Numbered from the stretch's first letter, positions 1 through 41,274 are shown. The stretch is DNA of 64,000 bases from Geosiphon pyriformis uo1 (GCA_016748015.1 JAAOMT010000384.1:211263-275262); one strand, 5' to 3'. Numbers and translations: made by a program. The notes: generated from the letters alone by a model not told the origin.

Positions 1-7
1 CTGTCCA

Positions 8-1749: not shown

Positions 1750-2110
1750 TCCAGTTGAACCAAAACCTTGTGTTCCTCTTTTGCTTTTTCTCAATTGTTC
1801 TCTTTGATTGATTAACTGTAAGCCCAAAATGTTGATTAAGGATAAATAGATAGCTTGAGCAATTTTTTCAGCATGTTCAATTTTGAAAGGTTTATTGGTT
1901 TCATTTTGGAGTATTACTGTTATGTCACCAGTATATCCAGCATCAATTATTCCTCCTCTGACATTGATTCCTTTGCTTGCCAGAAAGGGCAATTTTGAGG
2001 TTGATTTTTGTGAAAGATTTGGGTTTGAGAACAAAAGTATCCTTGTCTGGATATCTTAGGTCATATCCAGCATCAATTTCATGTGCTTTTTCAGGTTTTA
2101 TTCCTTGTCT
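1750..2110 (-). pseudogene. dut: dUTPase domain of Gypsy A pol (motif-2 region deleted in this copy)
   Basis: AHEIDAGYDL (motif 1), GGIIDAGYTG (3), KIAQ (4), RGTQGFGSTG (5). Confidence 0.9.
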
Positions 2111-5460: not shown

Positions 5461-5490
5461 CTTTTGAAGTTGTTGTTACTGTGTTATTTC

Positions 5491-5505
5491 TATGGGAGAG
5501 CACCA
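5491..5505 (-). promoter_or_regulatory. Primer-binding site of Gypsy A (TGGTGCTCTCCCATA)
   Basis: TGG-initiated motif 2 nt after LTR end; resembles PBS of families B and C. Confidence 0.75.
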
Positions 5506-5507
5506 AA

Positions 5508-13978: not shown

Positions 13979-14102
13979 ATGACTCCACAAAAACTTTTTT
14001 TCTCTCTTTGACTGCTACCATACAATTTACTATGGAAATTAAGTTTTTTGCAAAGAGATCTTTAAAACATAATATTTTATTACTAACACAATAGACTTAA
14101 AA

Positions 14103-16364
14103 GTGTCTGACAACTACACCTTTAGTGAAGTGACACCAGTCATGCAAAGAAGTATAAATGAAGAGACTATTAAAAATAATAACCAAGTAGAATTAAACAT
14201 AGCTTCTGCTATAGACAAAGAAGAAAACAACACAATTTCACATAAACTGACAACAGTGGAAACTGCTAAGTCTATTACACCTCCATTCAGATTTGAAACT
14301 AACAACAGACAATTTAGAACTGTAAACACAAGTAGTAGAGATGACACACCTTTCAGAATTACTAACACAGCAAAAAGAACAGCTCCACATAGGCAAGTGG
14401 CAGACTTTTCTCCAACAACAGACAACAGACTAGAAGGAAAACTGACAAAAAGTACAAACACATTGGAAGAATAAGTGTAAAAGGGCTAACTGAAAAATTC
14501 AACCAAGTAATTAAAGAAGACTTATCCAAAAACATAACAACACAAACCAACAACTTTGTTTTACAACCAATGTTCAACAAAGGGGGAAATAGCAACAAAT
14601 TCCAAATGAAAGCTTGGACTGGTGAAAAGGGGGCCTTAAAGTCTCTGAAAAAAATAGATAGACCTTCAAAAACACCTAAAAAAGACAGTAAAAGAGCTGC
14701 ACAAATAGAAGCTGCTTTGAGAAAGTGCAATCTTGATATTTTGAACAGGATTAACAGTGGAAATTCTGTGGTGGAAAATGAGGAGCAAATGAACAATTTA
14801 TTTGTTGCAAACAAAGATAAGGCTGATATGAATGACACTGCAGAGGACATGGAAGACTCTGAATTGGGCTTGTCTAGCAGAATAGCAAGTCCAAGTCCAG
14901 GCCAATATAGGAGTAAATCACTTGGCAAAAAACCCATGTTCATGGAACCAAACTACGAGGAAGGATGGAAAACTGTGGTTCATGGAACAAAGAGACATGT
15001 GCTCTTTGTGCAGGCATTAGATATACTGGAAAAAAACATGGGAAAAAAGGTGGGATGGATTTACAACCTGCTGGGGGATGTTAGCTATCTCTTGGAGGCT
15101 GTGATGGCAAAAAACCAAAAAATCAGAATGGATTTCCCTTAAGTGGCTGGAAGGGATCAGGCCAAAGAAGTCCTAGCAAATAAGGAAATAGATTCTTTTC
15201 TGATGGCTATTAATGGCATTACCAACCTGATGGCAGGCCAAAGGAAAGTCCTGGTGAGAGATATTCCCTTAGGAATTTCAGATAGAGAAGTAGGAGCTGT
15301 CATGAAAGAATTTGGTGAAGTTAAAAAAAGTGACTGAAAAATGGCAATCAGCTGTGGTTGAGTATAACAACCAGGAAGAGGCAACCAAAGCCATAAACCA
15401 ATGGTCAACCATGATCAGAAGGATGCAGTCAGAATTTATCCAATGATTGGAACCCAAAAAGTTGTTGAGCAGAGAAAAACCTGGGAAGCTAAATTGGTGG
15501 ACTTACCACAAAATTGTACTGCTCACTACTTGAGTACCACACTGGACCAGATCAAAGCCCAATCTTGCTTTATCCCAAGAACTAGCAAGAATTACACAAG
15601 GATGGGCTGTGCTTACATAGGATTTGACAGTAAAGCCAGCCACAACAGTGCTACCAAAAAGCCCTTAGTAATTGGAGACACATTGGTGCATTGGGTACCT
15701 ACTGATGCCAAAGAGTGTCACTTTTGTTACCAAGTAGGGCATTTAGTCTCCAAATGTCCAATTCTACACAAGAAGAAGGAAGGAGATACAAAGAAAGCTA
15801 CCAACAATATTAGATTGGCAAAGCTGTATGTTAGAAAGAATGTTCCAGAGGAATCCATCAAAGACTTTGGTGGAAAATTATATGCCGAAATGGTTGCACT
15901 CAGACTGCCTCATAAGCTAAATAACACAAACTCAAACAGATCTCCGAGAACTGGTCTACAAGTGAACAATAAAGAAGGACAACCAAAAAAGGGGATCAAC
16001 CAACTATGGAAGGCTGAAATTGATAAATTGAGACAACAGATTAACAAAATGGCCAAACTGCTGAGTGCTGTGACTGCCAAGCTTGGAGTAACAGTAGAAA
16101 AAGAAAAAGACATATTGGTTGCTCAACAGCAAAGTAACATCTCAGAAAATAAAAGAGGCAGAGACCAGGGTACTAAGCCAGAGCACTACATCTAAGTCTG
16201 ACCTGGAAGAGAAAAAAGAGGCATATGATCCAGAGAGGGAAATTAGGGTAATTAAAGAAACATTGGAACCCATTCTGGAGTTGCTAAAGCAAGTAAAAAA
16301 ACAGGGTGGCTGGGGCGATCCTGCTGCTGGGGAATCTAAACTTATAGAAACAGATGATGTGTAG
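14103..16364 (+). pseudogene. LINE ORF1 (RRM-like repeats, CCHC knuckle, coiled coil), frameshifted
   Basis: VLVRDIPLG...EFGEVKK, AKLVDLPQNC, CHFCYQVGHLVSKC, AEIDKLRQQINKMAKLL; stop 16362-16364. Confidence 0.8.
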
Positions 16365-19300
16365 CACACCTGATCCCAACACAGAACAGAACTATTCCAA
16401 CATCAATACTTGGAAAGTTGGTACTATTAATGTTAGAGAACTTAATAATCCTGGCAAAGCTGAAAAAGTGCTACAATGGTGTATAGGAGAATAATTTGAC
16501 TTCATAATTATTACAGAAACTTAACTAACTCCTACCAAAGAAAAGGAAGTATTTTTTAGCTCTGATGAATACCACACCTTTTGGAAGTCAAGTGCTGAGA
16601 AACAAATGGGATGCACCATGTGGAAACAATCAAGGAATATCATGGGAGGCTGTTACATTTGGTGTTGAAATTTAGGGGTAGAATCAGTGTGCATATAGTA
16701 GGGTTGTACATGCCTGCTTCCAAATCACCTACTGAGAAGGCAGTAGCAAAGGAGATCAGAAAACTTTTGGGAGACATTGTGCAAAACAAAGAGATAATCA
16801 TAGTTGCAGGTGATTTGAATGAAGATATGTCATCCAAATCACTTGAGGAAACATTTGCTACAAATAAGGTCAAAGCCTGTTCTACTGCTACAACATTGCA
16901 ACATATGAATTTGGTGAACACACATGGAGCTTATACAATAAACAATCCAGAAAAGACATGGGCATCAAATGGAGTACAAAGAAGATTAGACTATGTGTTT
17001 ACTGATGTAGTTACAGCCTCAATGGTTACAAATATTGGGGTGGTAGATGTTAATGAATTATTTAGCACTGATCACAAAGCAGTAATAACAATGTTCTGAT
17101 CTGACAGAATCAAATCTGGAAGAAAGAAAAGTAGCATGACTATGATTGATGTTAAAAAAACATCTGGGGTACAATGGGAAATCTATGCAAGAGAAACTGA
17201 TCAATTGACAGATGAAGCACAAAAAAAATCAGTAGATAACTGCAATGATAATCTAAACCAGATGTGGCTTACAATCAAGAAGACTGTGTTACAAGCTGCT
17301 GACTGCCTACCAAAAAGGAAAGTGGAAGCCCAATCTACACACACTAAGAAAGAATGTATGGATCACAAACTTGTTAAGATTATTGCTGATATAATCAAAC
17401 AAATAAGAATAAACAATACAGATATGTATGATATCAATATTATGCAGTTGTTGGCTAAATGAAAACAGCTGAAACCTGATGCAGTAACTGCATATCTGAT
17501 AACTCTCCCAAAAGATAAGCTTATTACAGAATTAATCAGCATTAAGAAAGAATACAGATCAACACTGCAAGCTAGAATCAGGCTACAACAACAGAGACAG
17601 ATCATGGACAATATGATTAAAAGACAACAAAACTTTGAACTAAACAAAGGAGCAATGATCAAAAGCATTTTGACAAAGAATAGTACTAGACCATGTCATT
17701 GAAGAAGGCAAATTTCATGACAATCTTGATGAAATCAAAAAGCTGGTAAACAAAAAAGCTCAAGGTTGGACTAGAACAAGAATTCTTGAACCTGAGCTAT
17801 GGAAAAGTTGGGAAAACAGGTTTAAGCCAATTGACAGCATTCCAGATCATGCCTTTGATAGTGTGATGACTGAAATAACAAATGAAGAATTTGAACACAT
17901 ACTAAGTCACACATCTCACAACAAAGCCCCTGGCCCATCAGGCATTCAAGCTGAGCTCTGAAGGAAAGCTGGGCCTAACACCAAGTCCAAACTGAGAACA
18001 TTGCTTAATACATGCATAGAATTGGCAAACATGCCAGAGGAGTGGAGAATAGCACAAGTCATACTGATTCCAAAGCCAAAAGAATGAGGTGGCAATATTG
18101 ACATTACCAGACCAATCACACTCATTGAAAGTACCAGAAAAATCTTAACAAAGATTCTAACTGCAAGGATATCAAAAGCATGTGAGCTACACAATGTCCT
18201 AAAAAGTTACAACACCTCAGTTTTAAAGAATACCTCTACAGCTGTGCCAATTTATGTAATTAATGCTGTAGCTGAGCATGCAAGAGAATTTGGTAATGAG
18301 GCCTGGTTTACATTTCAGGACATGAAAAAGGGATATGATTCAGTTGGTTGGAAACCCATGGAAGCTGCACTAAAAAGAATCAAGATAAACAATAGGTTTA
18401 CTAAGCTGTTTGGCTTGATGCATAACAACAGGAGTAATAGAATCATAACCAAGTTTGGATTAAGTGATGAATATCATGTACAAGATGGGCTAGATCAGGG
18501 GGAAACAAGCTCACCCATTATGTAAAGGATTTTTTATGACCCCTTACTGTGTGAAGTGAAAGAGACCAATTATAGCCAAGGGTACAAACTAACAGCTGAG
18601 TGGAAAAAGTGGGACAATCATATGGACACACAATCTCTGTTGGTATTAGTAAATCACCTTGCCTTTGTTGATAACACCGTGTGAATAGCAAACTCAAGAC
18701 AGGGAATGCAGAGTATTCTAGACACAGCCAGCTCCTTCTTTAGAATGGTGGACATTGAGATCAACTTGGATAAGACTGAAACAATGGTGGTCAGATCCTC
18801 TAAGAAAAAATCAGTGGCAGTTGAGCCACTGATATTTGGGCCAAACAAACAACCTCTGAAACTGCTGGATCCATCTACATGTACCAGATATTTGGGAGTG
18901 TAGATCAGAGCTGATGAAAAAAATGAAACTGTACTAAAAATGATTGGATCTGACATTGAAGCAGTGTGTGGAGTTATTAGGAAAAAACACATTACTGAAA
19001 AGCAGATGATCTACATTTTCAACAGTGTACTAAGTCCAGCAATAGAATTTAGATCTTAATTGACCCATATTCCAAATAGTTGGGCCAGAAGATGAACTTC
19101 AAAGATCTCAGCCACTGTAAAGAAAAAGGCTAGACTTTCAGTAGATTTCCCAGCCAGTGTCATGCATCACTCATCCTTGTATAACTTGTTTAAAATTGAT
19201 GATATACAAGCAAAAAGCAAGATCACAGATTTGTTAGTTAGATTGAACAGTAATGATATTGCTGAAATGGCTACCAAAATTAGACTAGCCAATTTACCAC

Positions 19301-19628
19301 AAAAATGGTCAGCTCATAATATACTTGAATATCCCACTGATGAATGACCTAAGCCAGAGGCTAATCTTAAAGACAATATCATGCAGATTATGAGGGAAAG
19401 GGGCATCTCACTCAAAAGCTCTGGTAACACAGATGAGATACCTGAATTTTCAAGACCACAAGCACACTTAATTGAGACCACTATAGCTTCATGTGCAATC
19501 TACACCAAAGTTAGAGGCTTACTAAGGAAAGAGAACATTTTGTATTTGCATCAAATGCAGAACAGAGATGGATCATTAATGACATGGATGGACTTCACAA
19601 GAAGATACAGACAGAGTGACAATGGTAG
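16354..19628 (+). pseudogene. LINE ORF2 (AP endonuclease, RT), disrupted
   Basis: MMCSTP...KVGTINVR, AGDLNED, RLDYVF, STDH, RPITLIE, FQDMKK.YDSV, LDQG, AFVD. Confidence 0.9.
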
Positions 19629-20258
19629 TGTTATGGTTGAAACCCATAATTTTTATTAATTATCACATGTATTAGCCACTGATGTCATATAATTAGCCAC
19701 TCTATTTTTAGATAGTGATCATTGACCTGGTCATTGACCACTTTCAATAGCTATATAAGCAATAAGTCTCTTAGCTGTAGAAAATCATCTCTTAGACAAG
19801 AATCAAATAAATAAAAATAACAACTTTCATCTCAATCATTCTCTTATCGCTAATTTCCCTTTCCCTACCTTTAAGTATCCAAACATCTTAGGATAAAAGA
19901 TTACTTGTTGGCCTTTTCCTGATGTATATAATTGTAGCATTTGAAGATTATTTGAATAAACGTGACTAAAAAGCACAAGTTGATACCTAATATTGAATTC
20001 TAAGAGTGCCGACATGAGGCATAGAATTATACCAGTGGTAATCAATTGTTGACAGTACAGACTATCCTTCTACCTTCAGATTCCCCAGTTACTTTTGAAA
20101 AGAATAGCGACTGAGATATTTTATGAGACTGATCTTGCACATTAAATCCATATTCATTCAATTCACTCATTGAAGTTAAATCCTCTTTGATTATTTCCAT
20201 CACCCTACAATTCTGTTCTCTCTTACTATCCATTAGCTTGTTACTCCAATCCATAACA
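19629..20258 (+). repeat. Family B LTR (630 bp)
   Basis: TGTTATGG...CCATAACA inverted ends, TATATAA and AATAAA; homologous to 38055, 53786, 60759. Confidence 0.93.
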
Positions 20259-21880: not shown

Positions 21881-22813
21881 CCAATCAGAAGAAAACCTTT
21901 TTTATGCTTTTAACTTAACTGATGATGACCATGACATAGATGAACTTGCAATCAACACTTCTGAATCAACAAAAAAGAAGAAGAAAGCCAAGGTTGATTT
22001 TGTTATAGATCCAAAGAAAACCTCCACATCAACTGCTTTTTTTTTTTTTGTTAATGTATAGCCATGCTGGTCTTTTATTAGTTTTGCCCCACCTGAAAAT
22101 ATAGCATTTTCATAAAGCCAACTCACTCAATAATTTAAATTACAAGATGTGGCTAACCACTAAGTGGTTAAGCCTAACTACATGCTAATATAACCAAAAA
22201 ACCTAAGGGGTATCACACTATCACATAAATTAACTTTACTACTAAGACTCTCATTAAGTATCTTATTACAACTTGTGAATCTATCACCCATTTTAACTCT
22301 GGTTTTGCCACTATCACTACCACTACTCTTTAATATTTTATGTACATTAGACACATTTGATATGCTCCTCTTAGCAATGTTATCAATACTTACAGATTTC
22401 TCACACTCAGTTTGTAATTTGCAACGTTCTTTCCACAATCTTTTTCTTGCTTAAGTCACCACCCATTTACACACCTTAATTAATATATTATTGTTAGTCT
22501 TCTGATCAATATCAGCAAATGCATTGATTCTCCCAAATTGCTTATTGATTAATCCTTTGCATAACAGGTCTATGTTGGATGTTGACTTGATGTACTCATT
22601 AGACAAGACCACCCTTTCAGCATGGTCTGAAGATCTATGTTTTTTTCCTACAGCTTTTGACAAGCACAGCATCCACTCTTTTTTTATGTCATCTATTAGT
22701 GTCTTGCCCCTCTGAGTACTTAGAGAGCATTCCCAAAAGTGCCAGTTGGTTTCAACTTCCATGTAACATACTTTGCAAAGGTTGTTTAAATACACCTGGG
22801 GACATCTATTACT

Positions 22814-25241
22814 AAAAAAAACTCTTTCTCTCCTAAATTTCATGACCACAAATAGAGCTAAGAGTAAAAAAGTTGCAAACGTTACTTTTCCTATAGTAAC
22901 TAATAAAGTTTTAACACAAGAGGGCCTCTCTGTTATTGAAGCAGCTAGACAAAATGTTCTGGCAACATTTCCTTTAAAAAATAATAGTAATAAGCTGCCT
23001 TTAGCAGCTTCTGGTTTATTTTCTTCACCTTTGGCTGGTAGTTCTTCTTCAGTCAAAGTTTTTTCAAAAAGACACACTTGGGTTAGTCCCAGTGTTGTCT
23101 CCACTACTTCAAAAAGCCCAAAGATTTTTAATAACAGGCCAGTCAACAAGTTGGTCTTTCCTGCTCTCACTACTCCCACTATTACTTCTACTACTACTGC
23201 TTCACAAATGGCTGTAAAAGCAAAAAATCCCAAAAAACAGCAGCAGGCAGTTGCAACTGCCATGGTCACACCAAACCTCTTTGTGGTTCCAGATGAGATC
23301 TTCAGTAAGATCTTCACAGCAGCAGCCAGCTCTATTCCTGATATGGATGGCAACAGCAGCAGCACATCTCCCAAGATGGGCCAAGATCAACCACTGGCTG
23401 TGTTGCCTGATGTGGTACTCTCCAGCAGATCATCGCCAATCCCAGTAGCAAAACAGTCCATCAATCCAGATGATCTCAAAGATTGGGCTAATCAGATGGA
23501 AATGGAATCATCTGTGCCCCCCCAGTTTCTGGTGCATCTGATGCTGGTGCTTGGGAGAATGTGAATGGATGTCAAAGGTTCTCTGGTTGGGTGGCCTCCA
23601 ATCTTGTACCTGGTGCTATGTTTAAGATTAAGATGGCTTTGCTCAGTTCTTTGTTTCAGTTGATGCCTGGTTGTATTGGGCTTAAATCTGTTTCACGAGA
23701 TGCTGTCAAGTTGTTCTGTGTGGAATTTGCATCTCAGGAGTGTCTAAATGGTGCTACCAAAGTGGCCATTGGTGATGAGGTTTTTTTGACCACTCTTAAG
23801 ATTGCATGGTCTTCAGGAGTGACCTCTGTTTCTTCCTCTTCTTTGTCAGTTATACTGCGCAATGTACCCTTGGGTGCCTCTTCTGATGACATCAAATCTG
23901 CTCTTGGCGTCTTTGGCGTTGTCACTTCTGTTAAGTTGAAGCCTGCTGGCTTATGGCAATATGCTGTGATTAACTTTAAGAACATTTCTTCTGCTGCTGC
24001 TGCTCTCTCTAACTGGTCTGTGTTGGTCAGAAAAGATAGTGTTAGGATTCTTCCCATTGCCAACCAAAAGGAGGTTATCTCCTCAAGAGATGCTTTCAAA
24101 GCTAAGCTGGTTAATTTTCCATTTGGCTGCACTGCATTTAAGATAAGTGATCTGGTCTTCCAAGTTGGTGGCCATACGTGTTTCATTCCCTGCTCCCCTG
24201 ATTCCTATCAATGTCAACACTTTGCTGTGGTGACCTTTGATTCCTTGGAATCTTTAAATGCTGCTGTTTCAAAAACCAGTACCTTATGTGGCTGCCGCAT
24301 CTGGTGGGAAACTCCTGGATGTCATCACTGCTATAGATGTCAAAGTTTGGATCATTTGGCTGTGGACTGCAAGGTGTTGCCACCTCTCCCTCCCAAACTC
24401 TTCTAATTCCGCTGGTGGTCCCGCCTTTCTCAAGTCATCTCTTGTTGGAGCTAAATTCTACGCCAAAGCTGCCACCTCTGTGGTTCCTCCTGTTGCTGCT
24501 GCTGCTAATATGGGTCTGGCTTTCAGTACCTCCTCCAAAGTTGTGGTGCCACTGTTGCCGGTTGCCTCCTCTGGTTCAGATGTTGCTGTTAATGCTAGAT
24601 TGGCTTCTCTGGAAACCCAACTTAGTGAGCTGTCTTTGTTGATCAAATCTATAGTTGAGCCTGTGAGTTCTTTGGTTGCATTGGTTACTACGTTATTGTC
24701 TACTCCACCAGTTATAGCAGAGACAATGAAGGAAAGTGTGATTGGATTGGGAAACCAAATTAAGGCTGTTTGTGCTGTGGCTTCTGTGCTACAAAAGGAA
24801 ATGGGGGCCCTCAAGTTGAGGAGTGAGAAGGTACACTATAACATATCTGATGATGAAGACATGGATGATGATGATGATGATGGTAATGTTAAAGATTTTT
24901 TGGTCTATGATAATACATTTGATGCAATGATGGAGTTATGAGAGGTTCAATCCTCTAATATCAAGTCCGATCCAGATCAGACAGCTAAGTGGATGAGCAG
25001 TCTCGTTAAGAGTAGTCATAAACTGGTATGCATTATGGGTAAGATGTATGAATTAGATATGTTTAATACATTAGGTAGCAAAGGTAGTACTAGCATGTAG
25101 TTAGGGCTTTCCACTTGTGGTTAGCCGCATCTTGTAATATGTATTATTGGGTGAACTGGCTTTATGAAACCGCCACATTACTGTGGACTAACTAATAAAC
25201 AACCGGTGTGGCTACATGTTAACAAAAAAAAAAAAAAAAAA
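22814..25241 (+). mobile_element. ORF1-only non-autonomous non-LTR element H1 (half-LINE-like), complete
   Basis: ~20-23 bp TSD (22791-22810 / 25242-25261), poly(A), LINE-like 3' tail, single ORF1-like gene, no EN/RT. Confidence 0.88.
22842..25100 (+). pseudogene. H1 ORF1-like protein (~750 aa reconstructed): S/T/P-rich N-term, RRM-like repeats, CCHC knuckle, coiled coil, acidic tract, conserved C-terminal domain
   Basis: VILRNVPLG..DDIKSALGVFGVV..WQYAVINF, AKLVNFPFGC, CYRCQSLDHLAVDC; ORF pieces 22773-23564, 23561-24406, 24258-24941; ends KGSTSM*. Confidence 0.8.
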
Positions 25242-25515
25242 TACACTTGAGAACATCTGTTGTATAGCATCTCTGCTGTCAGTAGCATGTTGTGAAATGA
25301 TTTCATGATAAATGTTCTTATTGCTGAGGAACCAGCTGAGATGAAGCCTGAAGACATTTTACCATCCCAGTTCCAAATTTTGGTTGTGCACTCCCAGTCT
25401 ATCTCCTGGTCTAAGGTCCCCAATGTTTTACATACTTTGCTATTTCTCATCCAATCCAAAGCTGCTTGAAGCCCAGTCTGTTGGCCCAGAAAATGTCTAA
25501 TATTCAGATCTAATT

Positions 25516-27915
25516 TTTTTTTTTATGTTAATGTGTACCCACACTGATTGTTTATTAGTTTTGTCCAACAATAAAGTTGGCACTTTCATAAAGCCAGCTC
25601 ACCCAATAATACAAAGTTTACAAGATGTGGCTAACCACTTAATGGAAAGCCCTAACTACATGCTAGTACTATCTTTGCTACTTAATGTATCAAACATTTC
25701 TAATTCGTACATCTTACCCATAATGCTAACAAGCTCATGACTATTTTTAACCATACTACTCATCCACTTAGCAGTCTGATCAGGACTGGATTTAATACTG
25801 GAAGACTGATCTTCCCATAGGTGCATCATGACATTTATAAACTGAAAAATCTTTATCTTCATCATCATCATTATCAACATCATCAACCATCTCATCAACA
25901 TCTGATCTATTCTCCAAGCAAATCCGTTCACTTATTGTCTCAAGACATGTTAATCTTTTCTATATCACAGTGGCAACAGCAGCCAAGCCTTTATTTTGCT
26001 TAGCCAACCCATCTACACATTCCTTAACTGACACATTCATGGCAGATGGAGTAGACAGCAATTTGGTAACCAATGCAACCAGAGCACCAACAGGTTCAAC
26101 CAAGGATTTAATCAACACAAATAGTTCACTAAGGTGGAATTCAAGAGAATTCAACCTAGATTCAACAGCAGTATTGGGAACAGAGGAAACAGCAGGCAAC
26201 ACAGGTGTTGTAGTTTCAGGAGAACCACCAAGATCCAATTCCATATCAGCAGCAGCAGCACCAGGAGGAACCACAAAAACAGCAGCCTTGGCATAAGATT
26301 TAGATCCAACAAATGAAATTTTTGGGGCCACCAAAGGTAGAAGAGGCAACTTCTTGCAGTCCACAGCAAAATGATTCAAGTCTTGATACCTGTAGTAGCA
26401 GTGACACCCAGGAGTTTCCCACCAGATGCAACAACCACGCAAGGTACCAGTTTTTAACACAGCAACATTCAGAGATTCCAAAGAATCAAAAGTAACCACA
26501 GCAAAGCATTGACGTCAATAAGATTCAGAGGAGTGAGGAATGAAACATGTATGGCTACCAACTTGGGAGACCAAATCACTTATCTCAAAGGCAGTACAGC
26601 CAAATGGAAGATTGACTAACTTAGCTTTGAATGCATCTCTTGAGGAAATAACCTCCTTTTGGTTGGCAACAAGAAGAATCCTAACACTATCTTTTTTGAC
26701 CAATACAGACCAGTTAGAGAGAGCAGCAGCAGCAGAAGAAATGTCCTTAAAATTAACCACAGCATATTGCCATAAGCCAGCAGGCTTCAACTTAACAGAA
26801 GTGACAACGCCAAAAATGCCAAGAGCAGTTTTGATGTCATCAGAAGAGGTACCCAAAGGTATGTCACGCAGTGCAACTGACAAGAAAGGGAAGAAACAGA
26901 GGCCACACCAGAAGACCATGCAATCTTAAGAGTGGTCAAAAACACCTCATCACTAATGGCCACTTTGGTGGCACCATTTAGACACTCCTGAGATGCAAAT
27001 TCTACACAGAACAACTTAACAGCATCTTGTGAAACTGACTTAAGCCTAATACAACCAGGCAGTAACTGAAACAAAGAACCAAGCAGGGCCATTTTGATCT
27101 TGAATGTAGCTCTAGGTACTAGATTGGAGGCCACCCAACCAGAGAACCTCTGATAACCATTCACATTTTCCCAAACACTACCATTAGCAGCACCAGAAAC
27201 TGGGGGAGGGACAGTTGATTCCATTTCCATCTGATCAGCCCAATCTTTGAGATCATCTGAATTGATGAACTGTTTTGCTACTGGGATTGGTGATGATCTG
27301 CTGGAGATTACCACATCAGACAATATAGCCAGTGGTTGATCTTGGCCCATCTTGGGAGATGTGTCACTGCTGTTGCCATCCATATCAGAAAGAGGGCTGG
27401 CTGCTGCTCTGGAGATCTTACTGAAGATCTCATCTGAAACCACAAAGGGGTTCAGTGCAACCATAGCAATTGTGACTGCCTGCTGCTGTTTTTTGGAATT
27501 TTTGGCTTTTGCAGTCATTTGTAAAGCAAAAATAGTAGTAGTAGTAGTAGTGGGAGTGGTGAGAGCAGGAAAGACCAACTTGTTGACTGGTCTGTTATTA
27601 AAAATCTTTGGACTTTTTGAAGTAGTGAAGACAACACTGGGACTAACCTGAGTGTGTCTTTTTGAAGAAACTTTGACTGGAGAAGAACTACCAGCCAAAG
27701 GTAAAGAAAATGAACCAGAAGCTGCTAAAGGCAGCTTATTACTATTATTTTTTAAAGGAAATGTTGCCAAAACGTTTTGTCTAGCTGCTTTAATAACAGA
27801 GAGACCCTCTTGTGTTGAAACTTTATTAGTCACTATAGGAAAAGTAACATTTGCAACTTTTTTACTCTTAGCTCTATTCGTGGTCATGAAATTTAGGAGA
27901 GAAATTGTTTTTTTC
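25516..27915 (-). mobile_element. ORF1-only element H2, complete
   Basis: 13-bp TSD TTCAGATC(T/C)AATT (25503-25515 / 27916-27928), poly(T), same 5' end and ORF as H1 (ATG 27887, stop 25656). Confidence 0.88.
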
Positions 27916-30900
27916 TTCAGATCCAATTCCACTCCTTCACAAAGGGAAATGTAGCTAATGTCCTTATTGCTGTAGGCCCACCCTATTGTGGCTAAAGCAG
28001 TAGCTTCTTTGGCAAGTTTGTTAGCCATCTCATTTTCAGTTATATCAGTGTGTGCAGCCACTTTGTTTATGGTGAGATCAATTCTCTTTTCACTTATTAC
28101 AGCTTTGATTGCATTCCATGTGCACCAGTTAGAGGTTTTGAGCTGATTCCTAACAGACAGAGAAGAATCTTTGGACAACCACTTCTGAGCTGTTGACACT
28201 ACTGCTTGGCTATCTGTGTTTAATGTCAGTTTACATTTGTAAGAGACTGCTTCCAAAGCCAATAGTACAGCTTTTGTCTCAGTTTTTGTTGATGATAATG
28301 TCCTGTCAACTGTTATGCCAAAGTTGGCATCAATTCCATGTGTCACAAAGGCAGCTGTTCCTTTAGTATCCTTAGAACCAGCTTTTACCAGTGAGCCATC
28401 AGTTGATATTTCTATTTTTTTTCTGAGTCTTAACTTTTCTCATATGCTCCTCTATTGTGATATTAAAGTTTCTGGAATTTGGATGTAAATAGAGTCCCTT
28501 TGTATCATTTCCAGATCATCTGGTATTTGATTATCAATCTTTTGCATTCCCATTGCTTCACATTGTGCTACATCAATGTTTCTGTGTTCATCCATGATGA
28601 TTGTAGACTCTAATATCTTAAACCAATTGGATATTCTATCATTGTCACTCTGTCTGTATCTTCTTGTGAAGTCCATCCATGTCATTAATGATCCATCCCT
28701 GTTTTGCACTTGATGCAAATACAAAATGTTTTTCTTCCTTAGTAAGCCTCTAACTTTGGTGTAAATTGCACATGAAGCTATAGTGGTTTCAATTAAGTAT
28801 GCTTGTGGTCTTGAAGATTCAGATATCCCATCTGTGTTACCAGAGCTTTTGAGTGAGATGCCCCTTTCCCTCATAATCTGCATGATATTGCCTTTAAGAT
28901 TAGCCCCTGGCTTAGATCATTCATCAGTGGGATATTCAAGTATACTATGAGCTGACCATTTTTGTGCCTGTAAGTTGGCTAGTCTGATTTTGGTAGTCAT
29001 TCCAGCAATATCATTACTGTTCAATCTAACTAACAAATCTGTGATCTTGCTTTTTGCTTGTATATCATCAATTTTAAACAAGTTATACAAGGATGAGTGA
29101 TGCATGGCACTGGCTGGGAAATCTACTAAAAGTCTAGCCTTTTTCTTTACAGTGGCTGAGATCTTCGAAGTCCATCTTCTGGTCCAACTATTTGGAATAT
29201 GGGTCAATTGAGATCTAAATTCTATTGCTGGACTTAGTATACTGTTGAAAATGTAGATCACCTGCTTTTCAGTAATGTGTTTTTCCTAATAACTCCACAC
29301 ACTGCTTTAATGTCAGATCCAATCATTTTTAGTACAGTTTCATTTTTCCCATTAGCTCTGATCCACACTCCCAAATATCTGGTACATGTAGACGGATCCA
29401 GCAGTTTCAGAGGTTGTTTGTTTGACCCAAATATCAGTGGCTCAACTGCCACTGATTTTTTCTTAGAGGATCTGACCACTATTATTTCAGTCTTATCCAA
29501 GTTGATCTCAATGTCCACCATTCTAAAGAAGAAGCTGGCTGTGTCTAGAATACTCTGTATTCCCTGTCTTGAGTTTGCTATCTACACGGTGTCGTCAACA
29601 AAGGCAAGGTGATTTACTGATACCAACAGGGATTGTGTGTCCATATGATTGTCCCACTTTTTCTACTCAGCTGTTAGTTTGTACCCTTGGCTATAATTGG
29701 TCTCTTTCACTTCACACAGTAAGGGGTCATAAAAAATCCTTTACATAATGGGTGAGCTTGTTTCCCCCTGATCTAGCCCATCTTATACATGATATTCATT
29801 ACTTAATCCAAATTTGGTTATGATTCTATTACTTCTGTTGTTATGCATCAAGCCAAACAGTTTAGTAAACCTATTGTTTATTTTAGTGCAGCTTCCATGG
29901 ATTTCCAACCAACTGAATCATATGCCTTTTTCATGTCCTGAAATGTAAACCAGTCCTTATTACCAAATTCTCTTGCATGCTCAGCTACAGCATTAATTAC
30001 ATGAATTGGCACAGCTGTAGAGGTATTCTTTAAAAGTGAGGTGTTGTAACCTTTTAGGACATTGTGTAGCTCACATGCTTTTGATATTCTTACAGTTAGA
30101 ATCTTTGTTAAAATTTTTCTGGTACTTTCAATAAATGTGATCGGTCTGGTGATGTCAATATTGCCACCCCATTTTTTTGGCTTTGGAATTAGTATGACTT
30201 GTGCTATTCTCCATTCCTCTGGCATGTTTGCCAATTCTATGCATGTATTAAGCAATGTTCTCAGTTTGGACTTGGTGTTAGGCCCAGCTTTCCTCCAGAG
30301 CTCAGCTTGAATGCCTGATGGGCCAGGGGCTTTGTTGTGAGATGTGTGACTTAGTATGTGTTCAAATTCTTCATTTGTTATTTCAGTCATCACACCATCA
30401 AAGGCATGATCTGGAATGCTGTCAATTGGCTTAAACCTGTTTTCCCAACTTTTCCATAGCTCAGGTTCAAGAATTCTTGTTCTAGTCCAACCTTGAGCTT
30501 TTTTGTTTACCAGCTTTTTGATTTCATCAAGATTGTCATGAAATTTGCCTTCTTCAATGACATGGTCTAGTACTATTCTTTGTCAAAATGCTTTTGATCA
30601 TTGCTCTTTTGTTTAGTTCAAAGTTTTGTTGTCTTTTGATGATATTGTCTATGATCTGTCTCTGCTGTTGTAGCCTGATTCTAGCTTGCAGTGTTGATCT
30701 GTATTCTTTCTTGATGCTGATTAATTCTGTAATAAGCTTATCTTTTGGAAGAGTTATCAGATATGCAGTTACTGTATCAGGTTTCAGCTGTTTCCATTTA
30801 GCCAACAACTGCATAACATTGTTATCATGCATATCTGTATTGTTTACTCTTATTTGTTTGATTATATCAGCAATAATCTTAACAAGTTTGTGATTCATGC

Positions 30901-33900
30901 ATTTTTTCTTAGTGTGTATAGATTGGGCTCCCACTTTCCTTTTTGGTAGGCAGTCAGCAGCTTGTAACACAGTCTTCTTGATTGTAAGCCACATCTGGTT
31001 TAGATTATCATTGCAGTTATCTACTGATTTTTTTTGTGCTTCATCTGTCAATTGATCAGTTTCTCTTGCATAGATTTCCCATTGTACCCCAGATGTTTTT
31101 TTAACATCAATTATAGTCATGCTACTTTTTTTTCTTCCAGATCTGATTCTGTCAGATCAGAACATTGTTATTACTGCTTTGTGATCAGTGCTAAATGATT
31201 TATTAACATCTACCACCCCAATATTTGTAACCATTGAGGCTGTAACTACATCAGTAAACACATAGTCTAATCTTCTTTGTACTCCATTTGATGCCCATGT
31301 CTTTTCTGGATTGTTTATTGTATAAGCTCCATGTGTGTTCACCAAATTCATATGTTGCAATGTTGTAGCAGTAGGATAGGCTTTGACCTTATTTGTAGCA
31401 AATGTTTCCTCAAGTGATTTGGATGACATATCTTCATTCAAATCACCTGCAACTATGATTATCTCTTTGTTTTGCACAATGTCTCCCAAAAGTTTTCTGA
31501 TCTCCTTTGCTACTGCCTTCTCAGTAGGTAATTTGGAAGCAGACATATACAACCCTACTATATGCACACTGATTCTACTCCTAAATTTCAACACCAAATG
31601 TAACAGCCTCCCATAATATCCCTTGATTGTTTCCACATGGTGCATCCCATTTGTTTCTCAGCACTTGACTTCCAAAAGATGTGGTATTTATCAGAGCCAA
31701 AAAATACTCCCTTTTCTTTGGTAGGAGTTAGTTTAGTTTCTGTAATAATTATGAAGTCAAATTATTCTCCAATACATCATTGTAGCACCTTTTCAGCTTT
31801 GCCAACTTTCCAAGTATTGATGTTGGAATAGTTCTGTTCTGTGTTGGGATCAGGTGTGCTACACATCATCTGTTTCTATAAGTTTAGATTCCCCAGCAGC
31901 AGGATCGCCCCAGCCACCCTGTTTTTTTACTTGCTTTAGCAACTCCAGAATGGGTTCCAATGTTTCTTTAATTATCCTAATTTCCCTCTCTGGATCATAT
32001 GCCTCTTTTTTCTCTTCCAGGTCAGACTTAGATGTAGTGCTCTGGCTTAGTACCCTGGTCTCTGCCTCTTTTTTTTTTCTGAGATGTTACTTTGCTGTTG
32101 AGCAACCAATATGTCTTTTTCTTTTTCTACTGTTACTCCAAGCTTGGCAGTCACAGCACTCAGCAGTTTGGCCATTTCATTAATCTGTTGTCTCAATTTA
32201 TCAATTTCAGCCTTCCATGGTTGGTTGATCCCCTTTTTTGGTTGTTCTTCTTTATTGTTCACTTGTAGACCAGTTCTTGGAGATCTGTTTGAGTTTGTGT
32301 TATTTAGCTTATGAGGTAGTCTGAGTGCAGCCATTTCAGCATATGATTTTCTACCAAAGCCTTTAATGGATTCCTCTGGAACATTCTTTCTAACATACAG
32401 TTTTGCCAATCTAATATTGTTGGTAGCTTTCTTTGTATCTCCTTCCTTCTTCTTGTGTAGAATTGGACATTTGGAGACCAAATGCCCTACTTGGTAACAA
32501 AAGTGACACTCTTTGGCATCAGTAGGTACCCAATGCACCAATGTGTCTCCAATTACTAAGGGCTTTTTGGTAGCACTGTTGTGGCTGGCTTCACTGTCAA
32601 ATCCTATGTAAGCACAGCCCATCCTTGTGTAATTCTTGCTAGTTCTTGGGATAAAGCAAAATTGGGCTTTGATCTGGTCCAGTGTGGTGCTCAAGTAGTG
32701 AGCAGTACAATTTTGTGGTAAGCCCACCAATTTAGCTTCCCAGGTTTTTCTCTGCTCAACAACTTTTTGGGTTCCAATCATTGGGTAAATTCTAACTGCA
32801 TCCTTCTGACCATGGTTGACCATTGGTTTATGGCTTTGGTTGCCTCTTCCTGGTTGTTATACTCGACCACAGCTGATTGCCATTTTCCAGTCACTTTTAG
32901 TTAGACTTTTTTAACTTCACCAAATTCTTTCATGGCAGTTCCTACTTCTCTATCTGAAATTCTTAAGGGAATATCTCTCACCAGGACATTCCTTTGGCCT
33001 GTCATCAGGTTGGTAATGCCATCAGTAGCCATCAAAAAAGATTCTATTTCTTTATTTGTTAGGACTTTTCTGGCCTGATCTCTTCTAGCCACTTAAGAGA
33101 AATTCATTCTGATTTCTTGGTTTTTTGTCATCACAGCTCCCAAGAAGTAGCTGACATCTCCCAGCAGGTTGTAAATCCATCCCACCTTTTTTTCCATGTT
33201 TTTTTCCAGTATATCTAATGTCTGCACAAAGAGCACATGTCTCTTTGTTCCATGAACCACAGTTTTCTATTCTTCCTTGTAGTTTGGTTCCATGAACATG
33301 GGTTTTTTGCCAAGTGATTTACTCTTATATTGGCCTGGACTTGGACTTGCTATTCTGCTAGACAAGCCCAATTCAGAGTCTTCCATGTCCTCTGCAGTGT
33401 TATTCATATTGGCCTTATCTTTGTTTGCAACAAATAAATTGTTCATTTGCTCCTCATTTTCCGCCACAGAATTTCCACTGTTAATCCTGTCCAAAATATT
33501 AAGATTGCACTTTCTCAAAGCAGCTTCTATTTGTGCAGCTCTTTTACTGTCTTCTTTAGGTGTTTTTGAAGGTCTATCCATTTTTTTCAGAGACTTTGAG
33601 GCCCCCTTTTCACCAGTCCAAGCTTTCATTTGGAATTTGTTGCTATTTCCTCCTTTGTTGAATATTGGTTGTAAAACAAAGTTGTTGGTTTGTGTTGTTA
33701 TGTTTTCGGATGAGTCTTCTTCAATTATTTGGTTGAATTTCTCAGTTAACCCTTTTATGCTTATTCTTCCAATGTGTCTGTACTTTTTGTCAGTTTTTTC
33801 TTCTAGTCTGTTGCCTGTTGTTGGAGAAAAGTCTGCCACTTGCCTATGTGGAGCTGTTTTTTTTGCTGTGTTAGCAATTCTGAAAGGTGTGTTGTCTTCA

Positions 33901-34263
33901 CTACTTGTGTTTACACTTCCAAATTGTCTGTTGTCAGTTTCAAATCTGAATGGAGGTGTAGTAGGCTTAGCAGTTTCCACTGTTGTCAGTTTATGTGAAA
34001 TTGTGTTGTTTTTTTCTTTATCTGTAGCAGAAGCTATGTTTAATTCTACTTGGTTATTATTTTTAATAGTCTTTTCACTTATACTTCTTTGGATGACTGG
34101 TGTCACTTTATTAAAGGTGTAGTTGTCAGACACTTTTAAGTCTGTTGTGTTAATAATAATATATTATGTTTTAAAGGTCTCTTTGCAAAAAACTTAATTT
34201 CCAAATTTAAGGCATAGTAAATTGTATGATAGCAGTCAAAGAGAGAAAAAAAGTTTTTTTTTT

Positions 34264-34404
34264 GATCAGGTCAATGATCAGGTCAATGGTCAGATTATTG
34301 ATCAGGTCAATGATCACTTACTAAAAATAGAGTGGCTAATTTATGTGACATTAGTGGCTAATACATGTGATAATTAATAAGAAGTATAAGTTTCAACCAT
34401 AATA
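34264..34404 (-). repeat. Family B LTR, 5' ~140 bp, interrupted by LINE 5' end
   Basis: Reverse complement of LTR start with ATTGACCTGATC repeats; no PPT upstream so 5' or solo LTR. Confidence 0.85.
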
Positions 34405-37400
34405 ATATTTTCAGAAGAACCTTTGACAGAAAACCTAGCAAGAAAGCAAAATACAGTTATTGGTGGCATGGCCCTTATGCATGGTGCTGGTGCAATAAAC
34501 CTTTGTATTTACCAAGTGATGAATGCAAATCTTGTCTAATCTACTACAAAGATTGGGAACCAATTAGCTTAATACTTCGAAAAGAACTTAAAAAAGTACA
34601 AAAGACCTTTGAGAATGAACCACCTGAAATCTAATTACTAGTTGTAGAACAAAGAAAATCTTCCCCTGAAGAAAGAAAAGTGGACATTGAAAATCTGTTG
34701 GCTAGAAATAGCCCAGTTATCTCAAAATAAGGTGATATCTCTGGATGAACCCATGTAATACAACACACCATCACCACAAAAGAAACTTATCTCATCCATT
34801 TGAAGCCTTATTAATCCAATAGACACAATGATAAGTTTATTAAGAAAGAGATAAACCAAATGAAAGATCTTGGATTCATACAAGAAACCAAGAGTAAATG
34901 GACTTTCCCAGTTGTAATAGTATCCAAGAAAGATGGAACCCTACACTTCTGTGTTGACTACTGCCAATTAAATGCCATTACTATAAGAGACATATACCCA
35001 CTTCTCAAGATTGATGCAATGCTAAATAAATTCAATGGTGCTGTTTTCTTCTCAACTATTGATTTAACTGCTAAATTCTGGCAAGTAGAAATGGATCCAA
35101 AAAGTAGAAAAAAAACTGCCTTTATCACCAAGTATGGCACCTATGAATTCATAGTCATGCTTTTTGGTCTTACCAATACTCTTTTCACTTTTCAATGCCT
35201 AATAGATAAAGTGTTTGAATCAGTAAAAAAAAACTTTGTTCTGGTTTACTTGGATGATATAATTGTATATTCAAAAATCTGGAATGAACATCTTGAACAT
35301 TTACAAAAGATTTTTGACCTGCTCAGAAATGTTGGCCTTAAAATCAACCCAATCAAATTTTTCTTTGGACACCAATCCACCCAGTTCCTTGGTCATCTTA
35401 TTACAAAAGATGGAATTTTCTCTGACCCAGCCAAAGTTAAAAAAGTTCAGAACATTAGACAACTAATAAATATTCCTAAACTACACTCTTTCTTTGGTTT
35501 GGCCTCTTATTATTGCAAATTTATTAAGAATTTTTCCAAAATTGCCTTTCCTCTCAATTAGCTATTCAGGAAAAATGTCAATTATCACTGGGGCACTCAT
35601 CAACAAAAAGCTTTTGAATTTTTGAAGGAAAAACTTGTTACTGAACCAATTCTCAAACAACCTGATTTGGACCAATCTTTTATCTTCTACACTGATGCAT
35701 TTGGCTATGGACTTGGGTCTGTCCTTTCACAGAAAGATAAAAATGGTAGAGAACATGCCATAGCATATGCCAGTAGATTTCTCATACCAGCAGAAAAGAA
35801 CTATTCAGTTACTGAACAGGAATGCTTAGCAGTAGTTTGGACTACTAGCTACTGGGATCAATATCTTCTTGGTGCAAAATTCTTAGTAGTAACAGATCAT
35901 CAAGTCTTGGTTTGGCTGTACAAAAAAAAGAAGCTGGAACACAAGTGAATAACTCACTGAATACTCTACTTGGATGAATTTGACTATGATATTCAACACC
36001 ACAAAAGAACAAATTATCAAAATGCCAATGCTCTCTCTAGACTTACTATCTAGTGATAGTACAACTTCTCAAACCAAACCAACTTAATCATTAGTAACTT
36101 CTTCACAAACAAACACAATAATGGACTTGAACAACTACTCTGCCTTAATAGAATTTTTGGGTAAAAGACAATACCCACCTGAATACACTTAACAGCAAAG
36201 AGAACATTTGTGCAAACAATCAAATTTCTATTTGATCCACCAGAACCAATTATACAAAAGAAACAGAAAAGATCTTGACTGCTCTCAGAGAGTCATCAGA
36301 TTTGAAGAAAGAGAAATTGTAATATACAACATGCACACTGACCCATTAGCTGGACACTTTGAAAATACAAAAACAAATTAGAAAACTTTAGCTTGTTATT
36401 ATTGGCCTACCTTGGGAAAAGACATTGCTGAATACATCAAAACCTGTGACATCTGCCAAAAAAAAGGCAAACTCAATCACAAAGAAGATATCCATCTAAT
36501 CTCTGTTGGTCAACCATTTGACAGAATTGGTATAGATGTTGTTGGACCTTTAACAATCACTCCTGATGGCAACAGATATATTATCACAGCTACTGACTAT
36601 CTTACAAAGTGAGTAGAAGCAAGAGCCACCCCAGACCAAACAGCAGTCTCAATAGCCAATTTCATTTATGAAGATATCATTTGCTGTTATGGCTGCCTCA
36701 AAGAACTTTTATCTGATAACTTTGTAAAAAAATGGGAATACATTATAAACTTTCCTCTTTTTATTACCCCTAAACAAATGGCCTAGTGAAACGTTTCAAT
36801 AGAACATTATGTGAAACCCTAGCCAAAACCAGTGAAGAAACAAACTTATAAGACAAAGTACTGCCTTTAGCTTTGTTTGCTTATAGAACTGTGAATCATG
36901 ACATAACAAGTTATGAATCTTTTTATCTGCTCTATGAACACATGGCAACACTACCAATAAAAACTGACATTGAAACAATATCTTTTAAAAAGATCACAAT
37001 AAGAAATTACAAAGACATTTTGCAAAGAAAACTTGGTACCATTCTTGACTCCTTGGTAGAAGCATGAATAATTGCTTTTGAAAAGATAAAACAGTTCCAA
37101 AAAAAGCTTAAGAAAAAGAAAACCTATAAAACACTTTCTTTAAGTATTGGTGACTTGGTACTAGAATACCATTCTGACAGAGACAATGTTTATGGTGATA
37201 AATTTTCTAGCTGGTGGAAAGGACTTTTTATAGTCAACAAAGTTTTGAACAATGGTTCTTATATTCTTTAAGATCAATTCAGAACAATCTTTAATGATCA
37301 TTCTGTTCATGATACATGACTTAAGAAATATTATAAACGATCTGATTGGCTGCCTGTTATAATAATACCAACTCAAATGATCAGCAAAAATCAAGTATAA

Positions 37401-38694
37401 ATAAATGCACTATTCCCAAAATAGAGGTATCTTCAATTGACATGAACAATTATTTTTTGGATCAAAACATTCAAAATGTCTTCTATACTCTTCATGAGTA
37501 TTGGATCAAAAACTATCCAAATGCTACTCTGACTATTGGAAAACAAACCACCATAACTAATAACAATAGAACACATACTGTTATTAGACCAAAGAAAACT
37601 ACTACCAGAAGAGAAAGAATTGGTAGTAAAATGGATAAATATCTGTTGGAAAGTATAACAGCAGTTATACTTTCACCTTCCAACACAATTGGAAAAACAC
37701 TTCAAAAAATTTTATCTATAGACAAAAACTTGTCAATTAGAACTCTATGGTCACCTTGGTAAAATCATAAAGAATATAAAACTCATGAAGAAAACAACTT
37801 CAGAAATACAGACAGAAATTTTGGGCATTATATGGTTAGATGTCTCAAGAGTTTTAATTATTGCTAAAAGAGCCAAAACTTTAATACAAAGATTTAGTCT
37901 CTTGAATACAAAACTTATTTTGCCAAGTGTTATATACTTTATTCACAAAAGACTTTAACAAACTAGTTAGCTTTGAGTTAGATAAAACCCTTCCAATAGA
38001 TTACATCATAAATAGCTTGATTTTATCAAAGCTCAATCTCTTTGGAGAGGATAATGTTATGGTTGAAACTTATACTTCTTATTAATTATCACATGTATTA
38101 GCCACTGATGTCACATAAATTAGCCACACTATTTTTAGAAAGTGATTATTGACCACTTTTGACAGCTATATAAGCAATAAATCTCTTAGCTGTAGAAAAA
38201 TATGAAAAAATAAAAAAATCAAGGAAATAAAATAAATAAAATAACAACTTTCATCTCAATTATTCTCTTATCACTAAATTTCTCTTTCCCTATCTTCAAG
38301 TATCTAAACATCTTGAGATAAAAGATCACTTGTTGGTTATTTTTTATCCTTTTTCTGAAATGTGTAATTGCAACATTTGAAGATTATTGAATAAAACATA
38401 ACTGAAGAGTACATTTGATACCTGATATTGAATTCTAAGAGTGTTGACATGAGACATAAAATTATACCAGGCATGATCATTTGTTGACAGTACAGACTAT
38501 TCTTCTATCTTCAGATTCCCTGGTTATCTTTTGAAAAGCATAGCAACTGAAATATTTTATGAGACTGATTTCACACATTAAATCCATACTTATTTAATTT
38601 GTTCTTTAAAGTTGAATTCTCTTTGATTTCTTTCATTACTCTACAATTCTGTTTTCCCTTGCTATTTGTTAGCTTGTTATTCCAACCTGTAACA
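34405..38694 (+). mobile_element. pol: Gypsy family B fragment B2 (RT, RNase H, INT, ORF3, PPT, 3' LTR 38055-38694)
   Basis: VYLDD, YTDAFGYG, PFDRIGIDVVGPL, ORF3 from 37442, PPT GGAGAGGATAA 38044-38054. Confidence 0.93.
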
Positions 38695-38865
38695 ATATAT
38701 TAAGTAGCAAAGATAGTGCTAGTGTGTAGTTAGAGCTTTCTATTTGTGATTAGCCACATCTTGTGATTTTGTATTATTGGGTAAACTGGCTTTATAAAAA
38801 TGCCACACTACTGTGGACATAACTAATAAATGACTGGTGTGGCTACACATTAACAAAAAAAAAAA
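38695..38865 (+). mobile_element. ORF1-only element H3, 3' tail and poly(A)
   Basis: Homologous to 25066-25241. Confidence 0.85.
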
Positions 38866-40966: not shown

Positions 40967-41274
40967 CTAACAAATAATATTTTATTCCAAGATGTTCAAA
41001 TACTTAAAGATAGGAAAAGGAAAATTAGCAATAAAAGAATAATTGAGATGAAAGTTGTTATTTTATTTATTTTCTTTCTTTGATTCTTATATGCTTTTCT
41101 ATAGCTAAGAGATTTATTGCTTATATAGCTATCAAAAGTGGTCAATAATCAGATCAACAACTAGATTAATGATTAGGTCAATAATTACTATCTAAAAGTA
41201 GAATGGCTAATTATATGACATCAGTGGTTAATACATGTAATAATTAATAAGAAATATAGGTTTCAACTGTAATA
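40967..41274 (-). repeat. Family B LTR, 5' ~310 bp, interrupted by L4
   Basis: Reverse complement of LTR start incl. 12-bp repeats and TATATAA. Confidence 0.85.

Follow-up and report, generated by a model that had tools for sequence, protein, structure and literature searches.

Few parasites of long interspersed nuclear elements (LINEs) that encode only an ORF1 protein (the product of the first LINE open reading frame, ORF) are known. HeT-A of the Drosophila telomeres is a long-lived element without long terminal repeats (non-LTR) that carries a Gag/ORF1 gene and no reverse transcriptase (RT) of its own, and its Gag is distinct from the Gags of its RT-encoding partners TART and TAHRE. The mammalian HAL1 (half-L1) elements, which originated several times, are non-autonomous and encode only ORF1p (PMC5753468, citing Smit 1999 and Bao & Jurka 2010). 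In Dictyostelium discoideum, TRE5-A.2 is moved in trans by the ORF2 protein and requires its 3′ module for this (PMC3159450). Here we describe a family of the same kind, termed H, in the fungus Geosiphon pyriformis. Two complete copies, H1 and H2, are present in a stretch of 64,000 nucleotides of the assembly (GCA_016748015.1, JAAOMT010000384.1:211263-275262; the window hereafter), where both are nested inside a single LINE copy, the host LINE. We conclude that H is a protein-coding, non-autonomous non-LTR family which most likely spread by means of the LINE ORF2 protein acting in trans. To the known cases it adds a type-I ORF1, a structured 3′ tail shared with a LINE, and a long independent history.

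The H unit and its genomic copies

From 5′ to 3′, the H unit comprises an untranslated region (5′ UTR) of 28 nt, a single gene with about 750 codons, some 125 nt of 3′ UTR following the stop codon, and poly(A) (Table 1). H1 and H2 are 82% identical to each other across the whole length, and a repeat search of the window pairs them as inverted repeats (22815-25113 with 25643-27914, 70-94% identity). Both elements open with A(n)C..TTTCTCTCCTAAATTTCATG (H1 starts with AAAAAAAACTCTTTCTCTCCTAAATTTCATG, and the start of H2 is identical) and close with poly(A), and both ORFs run from ATG to a TAG located within the block AGCATGTAG. The two target site duplications (TSDs) of H1 differ by 4-5 mismatches over about 22-24 bp, and those of H2 by 1 mismatch over 12-13 bp. 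A paralogous LINE copy in the same window contains, at 9975-10320, the targets of H1 and H2, each in a single unbroken copy, and thus proves that the two elements were inserted and that their targets were duplicated. The window had been read before from its sequence alone, and this sequence-only reading reported two complete copies of about 2.4 kb, with a shared 5′ end, poly(A) and TSDs of variable length, together with two 3′ fragments. The element bounds, the tails and the paralogous empty site bear out the ends and the duplications, and all four copies are real; the second fragment ends at 45958, not 45998, and the poly(A) end of H2 lies at 25514/25516.

In genome-wide searches, only the best-scoring candidates were scored. 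For H1, searched against the 128-Mb assembly of G. pyriformis, these are 65 matches from the best 40 of 1166 first-look candidates. Of the 65 matches, 31 include the two ends of the 2.4-kb unit, hence the genome contains at least 31 full-length copies. Most of them are 90-94% identical, and three subfamily copies at 79-82% are also complete. H is therefore a discrete recurrent unit without endonuclease (EN) or RT, represented by 31 full-length copies with the same ends, and not a collection of random deletions. The best matches do not continue into an ORF2 with EN and RT; such a continuation had been named in advance as a result that would overturn the proposal of an ORF1-only family. The main subfamily, to which H1 belongs, is star-like (mean pairwise identity 91.6%, nearest neighbours 92-95%), with copies about 4% from their common source, and therefore appears to descend from one burst of one or a few source elements. 

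The other marks of the insertions are typical. In 22 of 30 copies the TSDs, which are 9-24 bp long, score no lower than the 99th percentile of controls with mismatched flanks, the poly(A) tracts are 10-60 nt long, about a third of the copies (n = 30) have 6-27 extra nucleotides at the 5′ junction, and 5′-truncated copies are present. H is thus a non-LTR (LINE-type) retroposon inserted by target-primed reverse transcription. Among the 30 copies, 8 are nested in a LINE, 3 in another H element and 3 in a dispersed repeat of about 145 bp, where they are inserted within about 40 nt of each other; the remaining copies are mostly within 500 bp of small repeats. The H copies mark repeat-rich islands, and their nesting order can be used to date LINE activity.

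Two side observations concern the substitutions in the copies. First, the private substitutions in the 30 copies (L001-L030) are 57% C:G>T:A, with a transition/transversion ratio of 3.2; singleton changes have no clear dinucleotide context, and the majority states, with 33 CpG, are already depleted of this dinucleotide. Second, the divergence between H1 and H2 is a mosaic. Identity is 94% over the opening 380 nt, falls to 86-88% further in and to 70-77% where the ORF encodes its C-terminal third, and is 83% for the tail; the synonymous divergence (dS) is between 0.14 and 0.66 along the ORF. Such a pattern points to either recombination among subfamilies or rates that are strongly uneven.

The public annotation treats H1 and H2 as protein-coding genes (G9A89_009494 and G9A89_009495), and the model P0026 (940 aa) extends from the LINE RNase H into H2 by read-through. 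At E ≤0.001, the H protein is matched by at least 266 G. pyriformis models labelled 'hypothetical protein', and the 120 best protein hits are all of this kind. At least the closest of these 266, including G9A89_009494 and G9A89_009495, are models of H elements, by which the gene counts are inflated. For G. pyriformis, a published survey noted an unusually large number of genes with transposon insertions in exons (PMC11952901).

The shared 3′ tail and the H protein

H and the LINE share a homologous 3′ end of ~145 nt. The ends of the LINE itself are well defined: at least 30 genomic copies start at one and the same nucleotide, and in at least 40 copies the C-terminus of ORF2 runs directly into this tail and its poly(A). 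The mean identity between the tails of H and LINE is 73% (31 H versus 12 LINE tails), compared with 41% in the 35 nt just upstream. The homology begins at the stop codon, where H reads ...STSM-TAG and the LINE ORF2 ...YISM-TAG, both inside the same AGCATGTAG block; H therefore carries the last codons of the LINE and its entire 3′ UTR. A tail motif consisting of TGGCTTTATGAAA, a gap of 20-45 nt and AACTAATAAA has 160 exact matches in the genome and none in a reversed control, and the first 100 matches listed are about 61 of the H type and about 39 of the LINE type. A shared tail of this kind, 73% identical over 145 nt, is what characterizes the partner of a stringent-type LINE.

Within the tail, a hairpin is present between the invariant blocks GGCTTTATGAAA and AACTAATAAA. 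Its position is kept and its stem is lineage-specific: AGCCATGC / GTGTGGCT in the LINE, CCACA / TGTGG in the main H family, and CCAAC / GTTGG in the H2 type. A fold at -3 kcal/mol or lower is reached by 23 of the 31 H tails and by 10 of the 12 LINE tails, with a mean z of about -3 relative to shuffled sequences. Covariation over the whole tail was also considered and rejected, as RNAalifold yields a weak consensus (-12 kcal/mol) in which compensatory pairs are few; the local hairpin alone is convincing. The two elements also begin alike for ~20 nt, with A(n)CTTTTTTTCTCTC at the LINE 5′ terminus and A(n)CTCTTTCTCTC at that of H, which as a link to the LINE is only suggestive. Together, the shared 3′ tail and 5′ terminus make it more likely that H depends on the LINE. 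The homology of tail and stop codon, the conserved hairpin and the likeness of the 5′ termini are new results of the present analysis; the resemblance of the LINE 3′ end (22037-22190) to the H tail was missed by the sequence-only reading.

The gene of H encodes a protein of the LINE ORF1/Gag type. Pfam detects an RRM_1 domain (3e-10, residues 340-392) and a borderline zf-CCHC, the latter being a canonical knuckle C-x2-C-x4-H-x4-C at residues 497-512. Neither EN nor RT is found in H by Pfam, and no further ORF of at least 150 aa with a domain is present inside the element. In the AlphaFold model (mean predicted local distance difference test score, pLDDT, 50; 65-87 in most of the folded core), a disordered N-terminus (residues 1-213) is followed by three RRM-like beta-alpha units (240-311, 337-395 and 403-492) and two long C-terminal helices (583-671), and the top PDB matches in a fold search of this model are tandem-RRM proteins. 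With the RRM upstream of CCHC, the H protein is a type-I LINE ORF1 in the scheme of Khazina & Weichenrieder, as summarised in PMC4120745. The gene of ~750 codons with RRM and CCHC and without EN or RT had been correctly recognized before. The ORF has 753 codons in H1 and 744 in H2 and is broken in both copies. 

The H protein is 24% identical to the C-terminal half of the host LINE ORF1 (E 5e-20). Distant relatives with 26-32% identity are found in Entrophospora and in soil metagenomes, and one of the metagenomic relatives is located upstream of RT and RNase H genes. In the phylogenetic tree, the H-type proteins form a clade of their own (support of 99 in the Shimodaira-Hasegawa-like approximate likelihood ratio test, SH-aLRT), which includes the H family, intermediates, and a sister family B at ~50% identity. 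Two groups of LINE-linked ORF1s lie outside this clade, the host LINE ORF1 being in the farther one. The nearest LINE-linked ORF1, at 29-31% identity, is that of another Geosiphon LINE (P0215/P0248 type). Given the identity of 24% and the separate clade, H did not arise by recent deletion from the host LINE. The base composition of the sense strands is in line with the contrast drawn earlier between a T-rich H and an A-rich LINE (T 32% and A 26% in H versus A 39-41% and T 21-24% in the LINE), and the earlier statements that the protein is only distantly similar to the local LINE ORF1 and that H is no simple deletion of that LINE hold as well. The annotated H-type gene models (≥68% identity, up to 1376 aa) are all devoid of EN and RT domains. 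The models P0026 and P0149 result from read-through across nested insertions.

A further observation concerns the N-terminal residues from about 37 to 106, which are predicted to be disordered and contain nearly invariant residues across families A (H) and B. These residues, for example K91-P93-K94-F96-N97-N98-R99...N102-K103-L104-V105-F106, may represent a short linear motif, which is absent from the host LINE ORF1.

Probable mobilization of the H family in trans and other explanations

The shared 3′ tail, stop codon and 5′ terminus lend indirect support to mobilization in trans by the LINE. In the probable mechanism, H would be transcribed from its conserved 5′ terminus, and its RNA would be coated by its own ORF1 protein. 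The LINE ORF2 protein, acting in trans, would then recognize the shared structured 3′ tail together with poly(A) and nick the target, and H would be inserted by target-primed reverse transcription.

Several points weigh against this reading. Among the LINE copies seen, which are mutually 75-80% alike and include two close relatives of the host copy (91-95%), no intact, contemporaneous helper was identified. The helper could also be a different LINE, as the H ORF is nearer to the P0215/P0248-type ORF1 than to that of the host LINE. The tails are only 73% identical and the stems of H and LINE differ, and that one RT would recognize both is what we infer. The likeness of the 5′ termini is confined to ~20 nt of low complexity, and both the transcription of H and the production of its protein are presumed. 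None of the 31 copies examined has an intact ORF. The longest frame, 706 codons in copy L024, is ended by a TGG>TGA change that 21 of 30 copies do not have, and the two copies in the window are dead relics. Finally, there is no selection signal within the main burst, where the ratio of non-synonymous to synonymous changes (N/S) is 2.18 for shared and 2.05 for private changes. No such signal is expected for neutral decay after insertion, and a star phylogeny leaves the test without power.

The broken ORFs in 31 of 31 copies and the main burst without a selection signal would also fit a different explanation, namely that H is a passive deletion derivative, a LINE remnant that kept its cis signals (5′ end and 3′ tail) and was copied like a long short interspersed nuclear element (SINE), its ORF being a relic. 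The N- and C-terminal thirds of the ORF are near the neutral baseline between subfamilies, which is again consistent with this possibility. We nevertheless consider it unlikely in view of the RRM-CCHC core (codons 221-520), in which substitutions were counted using per-column majority states. Between H2 and the main family, the dN/dS of the core is 0.25, versus 0.61 for the within-burst pair baseline. In H2 alone, the single-nucleotide codon differences in the core are 23 synonymous (S) and 15 non-synonymous (N), versus 58 S and 99 N in private decay (p = 0.01). When the seven older copies are pooled, the counts are 108 S and 73 N versus 58 and 99, so N/S is 0.68 versus 1.71, with p = 3e-5, a value that is too optimistic since related copies are counted as independent and that is one more point to be held against our reading. 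S equals or exceeds N in 6 of the 7 older copies. Because N/S in the core is below the decay baseline between subfamilies, the RNA-binding core was under purifying selection while the ORF1-only lineage diversified, and this selection on the ORF indicates that its coding capacity matters. Moreover, the frame of ~750 codons can still be recognized where subfamilies have diverged to 70% identity at the nucleotide level, as well as in a sister family with 50% identity of the protein, and with only 24% identity to the host LINE ORF1 it must have been kept through a long independent evolution. The proposed check of the protein structure gave the RRM-like units and C-terminal helices described above.

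A little less likely still is that the H units are by-products of an unseen autonomous LINE with an H-type ORF1, that is, recurrent ORF2-less transcripts (produced by internal deletion or splicing) copied by their parent and not by the host LINE family. A rare parent could have been missed with 40 of 1166 first-look candidates scored, and the greater closeness of the H ORF to the P0215/P0248-type ORF1 could be taken in the same sense. However, none of the best 65 matches continues into ORF2, no H-type gene model has EN or RT, and the closest LINE-linked ORF1 is only about 30% identical. In addition, a unit with the same ends persists across subfamilies at 20-30% divergence, and its tail is the one attached to the ORF2 of the host LINE family in at least 40 copies. 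Finally, processed pseudogenes of a cellular RRM-CCHC gene, with an mRNA often retroposed by LINEs, would equally show one shared 5′ end, a poly(A) tract, TSDs and only one ORF, but they are a very improbable source given that the LINE ORF2 end and 3′ UTR have their homologue in the final ~145 nt of H, stop codon included, that the protein groups with LINE ORF1s found upstream of RT/RNase H, that several diverged subfamilies were each amplified, and that no intron-bearing source gene was seen.

Mobilization of H in trans by the LINE may be part of a longer history. The sister family B consists of ORF1-type genes of ~700 aa, about 50% identical to H, for which a first look gave 5511 candidates; the 64 copies that were scored are all full length, 3 of them are without stops, and they are dispersed on many contigs. 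Exact matches to the tail motif are located near none of 36 family-B loci, compared with 15 of 19 family-A loci, thus family B is without this LINE tail. Tentatively, the H-type clade (H and B) can be viewed as an old independent lineage of protein-coding LINE parasites, with a protein of its own under selection, which changed its helper by tail exchange and recently out-amplified it; we regard this as possible and as distinctly less secure than the mobilization of H itself. If true, it would be a fungal counterpart of the HeT-A/TART relationship, in the form of a genome-wide selfish system. In any case, H bears on the question of why an element devoid of RT keeps its own ORF1 protein, with respect to cis-preference and to competition for the ORF2 protein of the helper.

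The window contains other repeats. The inverted LINE copies at 13989-19628 (+) and 27916-34260 (-) are 95% identical and 8 kb apart, and the 5′ flank of one copy resembles the 3′ flank of the other; the pair could be a segmental rearrangement instead of two insertions. Two LINE 5′ halves, 2457 bp apart, both end by an A-rich stretch just before the ORF1 stop. They were considered as a second ORF1-only family and rejected, as their end points are heterogeneous genome-wide and most copies continue into ORF2. The ~145-bp repeat is often found near LINE 5′ ends in either orientation, and may be either a hot spot of insertion or just a small element of high abundance. A repeat of ~300 bp, which occurs many times in the genome at about 91% identity, is a candidate SINE or miniature inverted-repeat transposable element (MITE).

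Table 1. Positions of H copies, LINE copies and other repeats (window coordinates, except for family B)
Feature	Position	Strand	Remarks
H1	22814-25241	+	full-length ORF1-only element; main younger subfamily, 90-94% to other copies
H1 5′ terminus / 5′ UTR	22814-22841	+	begins AAAAAAAACTCTTTCTCTCC...; first ~20 nt like the LINE 5′ terminus
H1 ORF1-type gene	22842-25100	+	753 codons; two frameshifts and one TGG>TGA
H1 3′ tail	25092-25223	+	from stop-codon block AGCATGTAG; LINE 3′ UTR homologue with conserved hairpin
H1 poly(A)	25224-25241	+	18 nt
H1 left TSD	22789-22812		about 22-24 bp
H1 right TSD	25240-25263		first As ambiguous with poly(A)
H2	25514-27915	-	full-length copy; older subfamily, about 83% to main family
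H2 ORF	27887-25656	-	744 codons, broken
H2 tail	25664-25525	-	
H2 poly(A)	25524-25514	-	A11
H2 TSD, 5′ side of element	27916-27927		ATTGGATCTGAA in LINE sense
H2 TSD after poly(A)	25503-25513		
5′-truncated H copy	38694-38865	+	last 172 nt, 85%, with poly(A)
5′-truncated H copy	45239-45958	-	H positions 1736-2418, 74%
Host LINE	22037-34260	-	7.4 kb minus the two inserts; EN-RT-RNase H
Host LINE ORF1 remnants (with CCHC)	32047-34133	-	
Host LINE EN (AP-endonuclease)	31157-31645	-	
Host LINE RT	about 29878-30393	-	
Host LINE RNase H	27960-28346	-	
Host LINE ORF2 C-terminus	25242-25515 and 22178-22813	-	ORF2 stop 22178-22180
Host LINE 3′ tail and poly(A)	22037-22190	-	homologous to H tail
Second LINE copy	6449-11016	+	5′-truncated, 73-81%; own tail 10872-11016; source of the H1/H2 empty sites
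Third LINE copy	13989-19628	+	95% to host LINE, positions 3-5625
LINE 5′ halves	38865-40964 and 41363-43419	-	3′-truncated; 5′ UTR and ORF1; 75% to host LINE
~145-bp dispersed repeat	34265-34410, 19631-19733, 38051-38154, 41140-41278, 53782-53918, 60755-60897		
~300-bp repeat	34402-34700, 12822-13120, 57068-57357		
Family B, example loci	G000:C659:642422-644545; C651:1005194-1007296; C705:145684-147804		outside the window

Comparison with known systems

L1 copies RNAs mainly via their poly(A), unlike the situation in H, which shares a specific 3′ tail with its LINE. HAL1 contains the L1-derived type-II ORF1p (coiled coil-RRM-C-terminal domain, Transposase_22), whereas H has a type-I ORF1 and is associated with an RNase H-bearing LINE in a fungal host; there is no Transposase_22 match in H, which has RRM-CCHC and C-terminal helices instead, so it is not a HAL1 proper. 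HeT-A has been domesticated for telomere maintenance and attaches to chromosome ends without TSDs. In contrast, H is dispersed in repeat-rich islands, its TSDs are ordinary, and nothing suggests that it serves the host.

A parallel in layout is TRE5-A.2, which derives from TRE5-A.1, is moved by the ORF2 protein of that full-length element and, like H, consists of a 5′ module, ORF1 and a 3′ module, without ORF2 (PMC3159450). The 3′ module of TRE5-A.2, a structured RNA, is essential (PMC3159450), and H keeps the LINE 3′ tail with its hairpin and a LINE-like 5′ terminus. There are also differences. TRE5-A.2 is a recent deletion that shares the ORF1 of its helper, whereas the H ORF is only 24% identical to that of the host LINE and falls, together with several old subfamilies, into a clade of its own. 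The targets of TRE5-A are tRNA genes; H shows no such target, and 11 of 30 copies are nested in LINE or H elements. Mobilization in trans is experimental for TRE5-A.2 and deduced for H.

Among fungi, the EKA family (Avrk1/Avra10) of Blumeria graminis is comparable in being a large family that derives from the ORF1 of RNase H LINEs (Satine, Kryze) and is annotated as genes (PMC4641428). However, EKA genes are truncated or degenerate LINE copies without the zinc-knuckle half, some of them co-opted as effectors, whereas H is a discrete unit with defined ends, poly(A) and TSDs. A survey of transposons in arbuscular mycorrhizal fungi makes no mention of such ORF1-only elements (PMC11952901). In SINE-LINE pairs, the non-autonomous partner bears the 3′ tail of its LINE, which is recognized by the LINE RT (PMC5786205, PMC3747384); H likewise carries a LINE 3′ tail. 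SINEs are short, non-coding and transcribed by pol III, whereas H is 2.4 kb long and encodes a protein of ~750 codons under selection. In sum, H is an ORF1-only element of the HAL1, TRE5-A.2 and HeT-A kind, in which a known strategy is followed by a new lineage.

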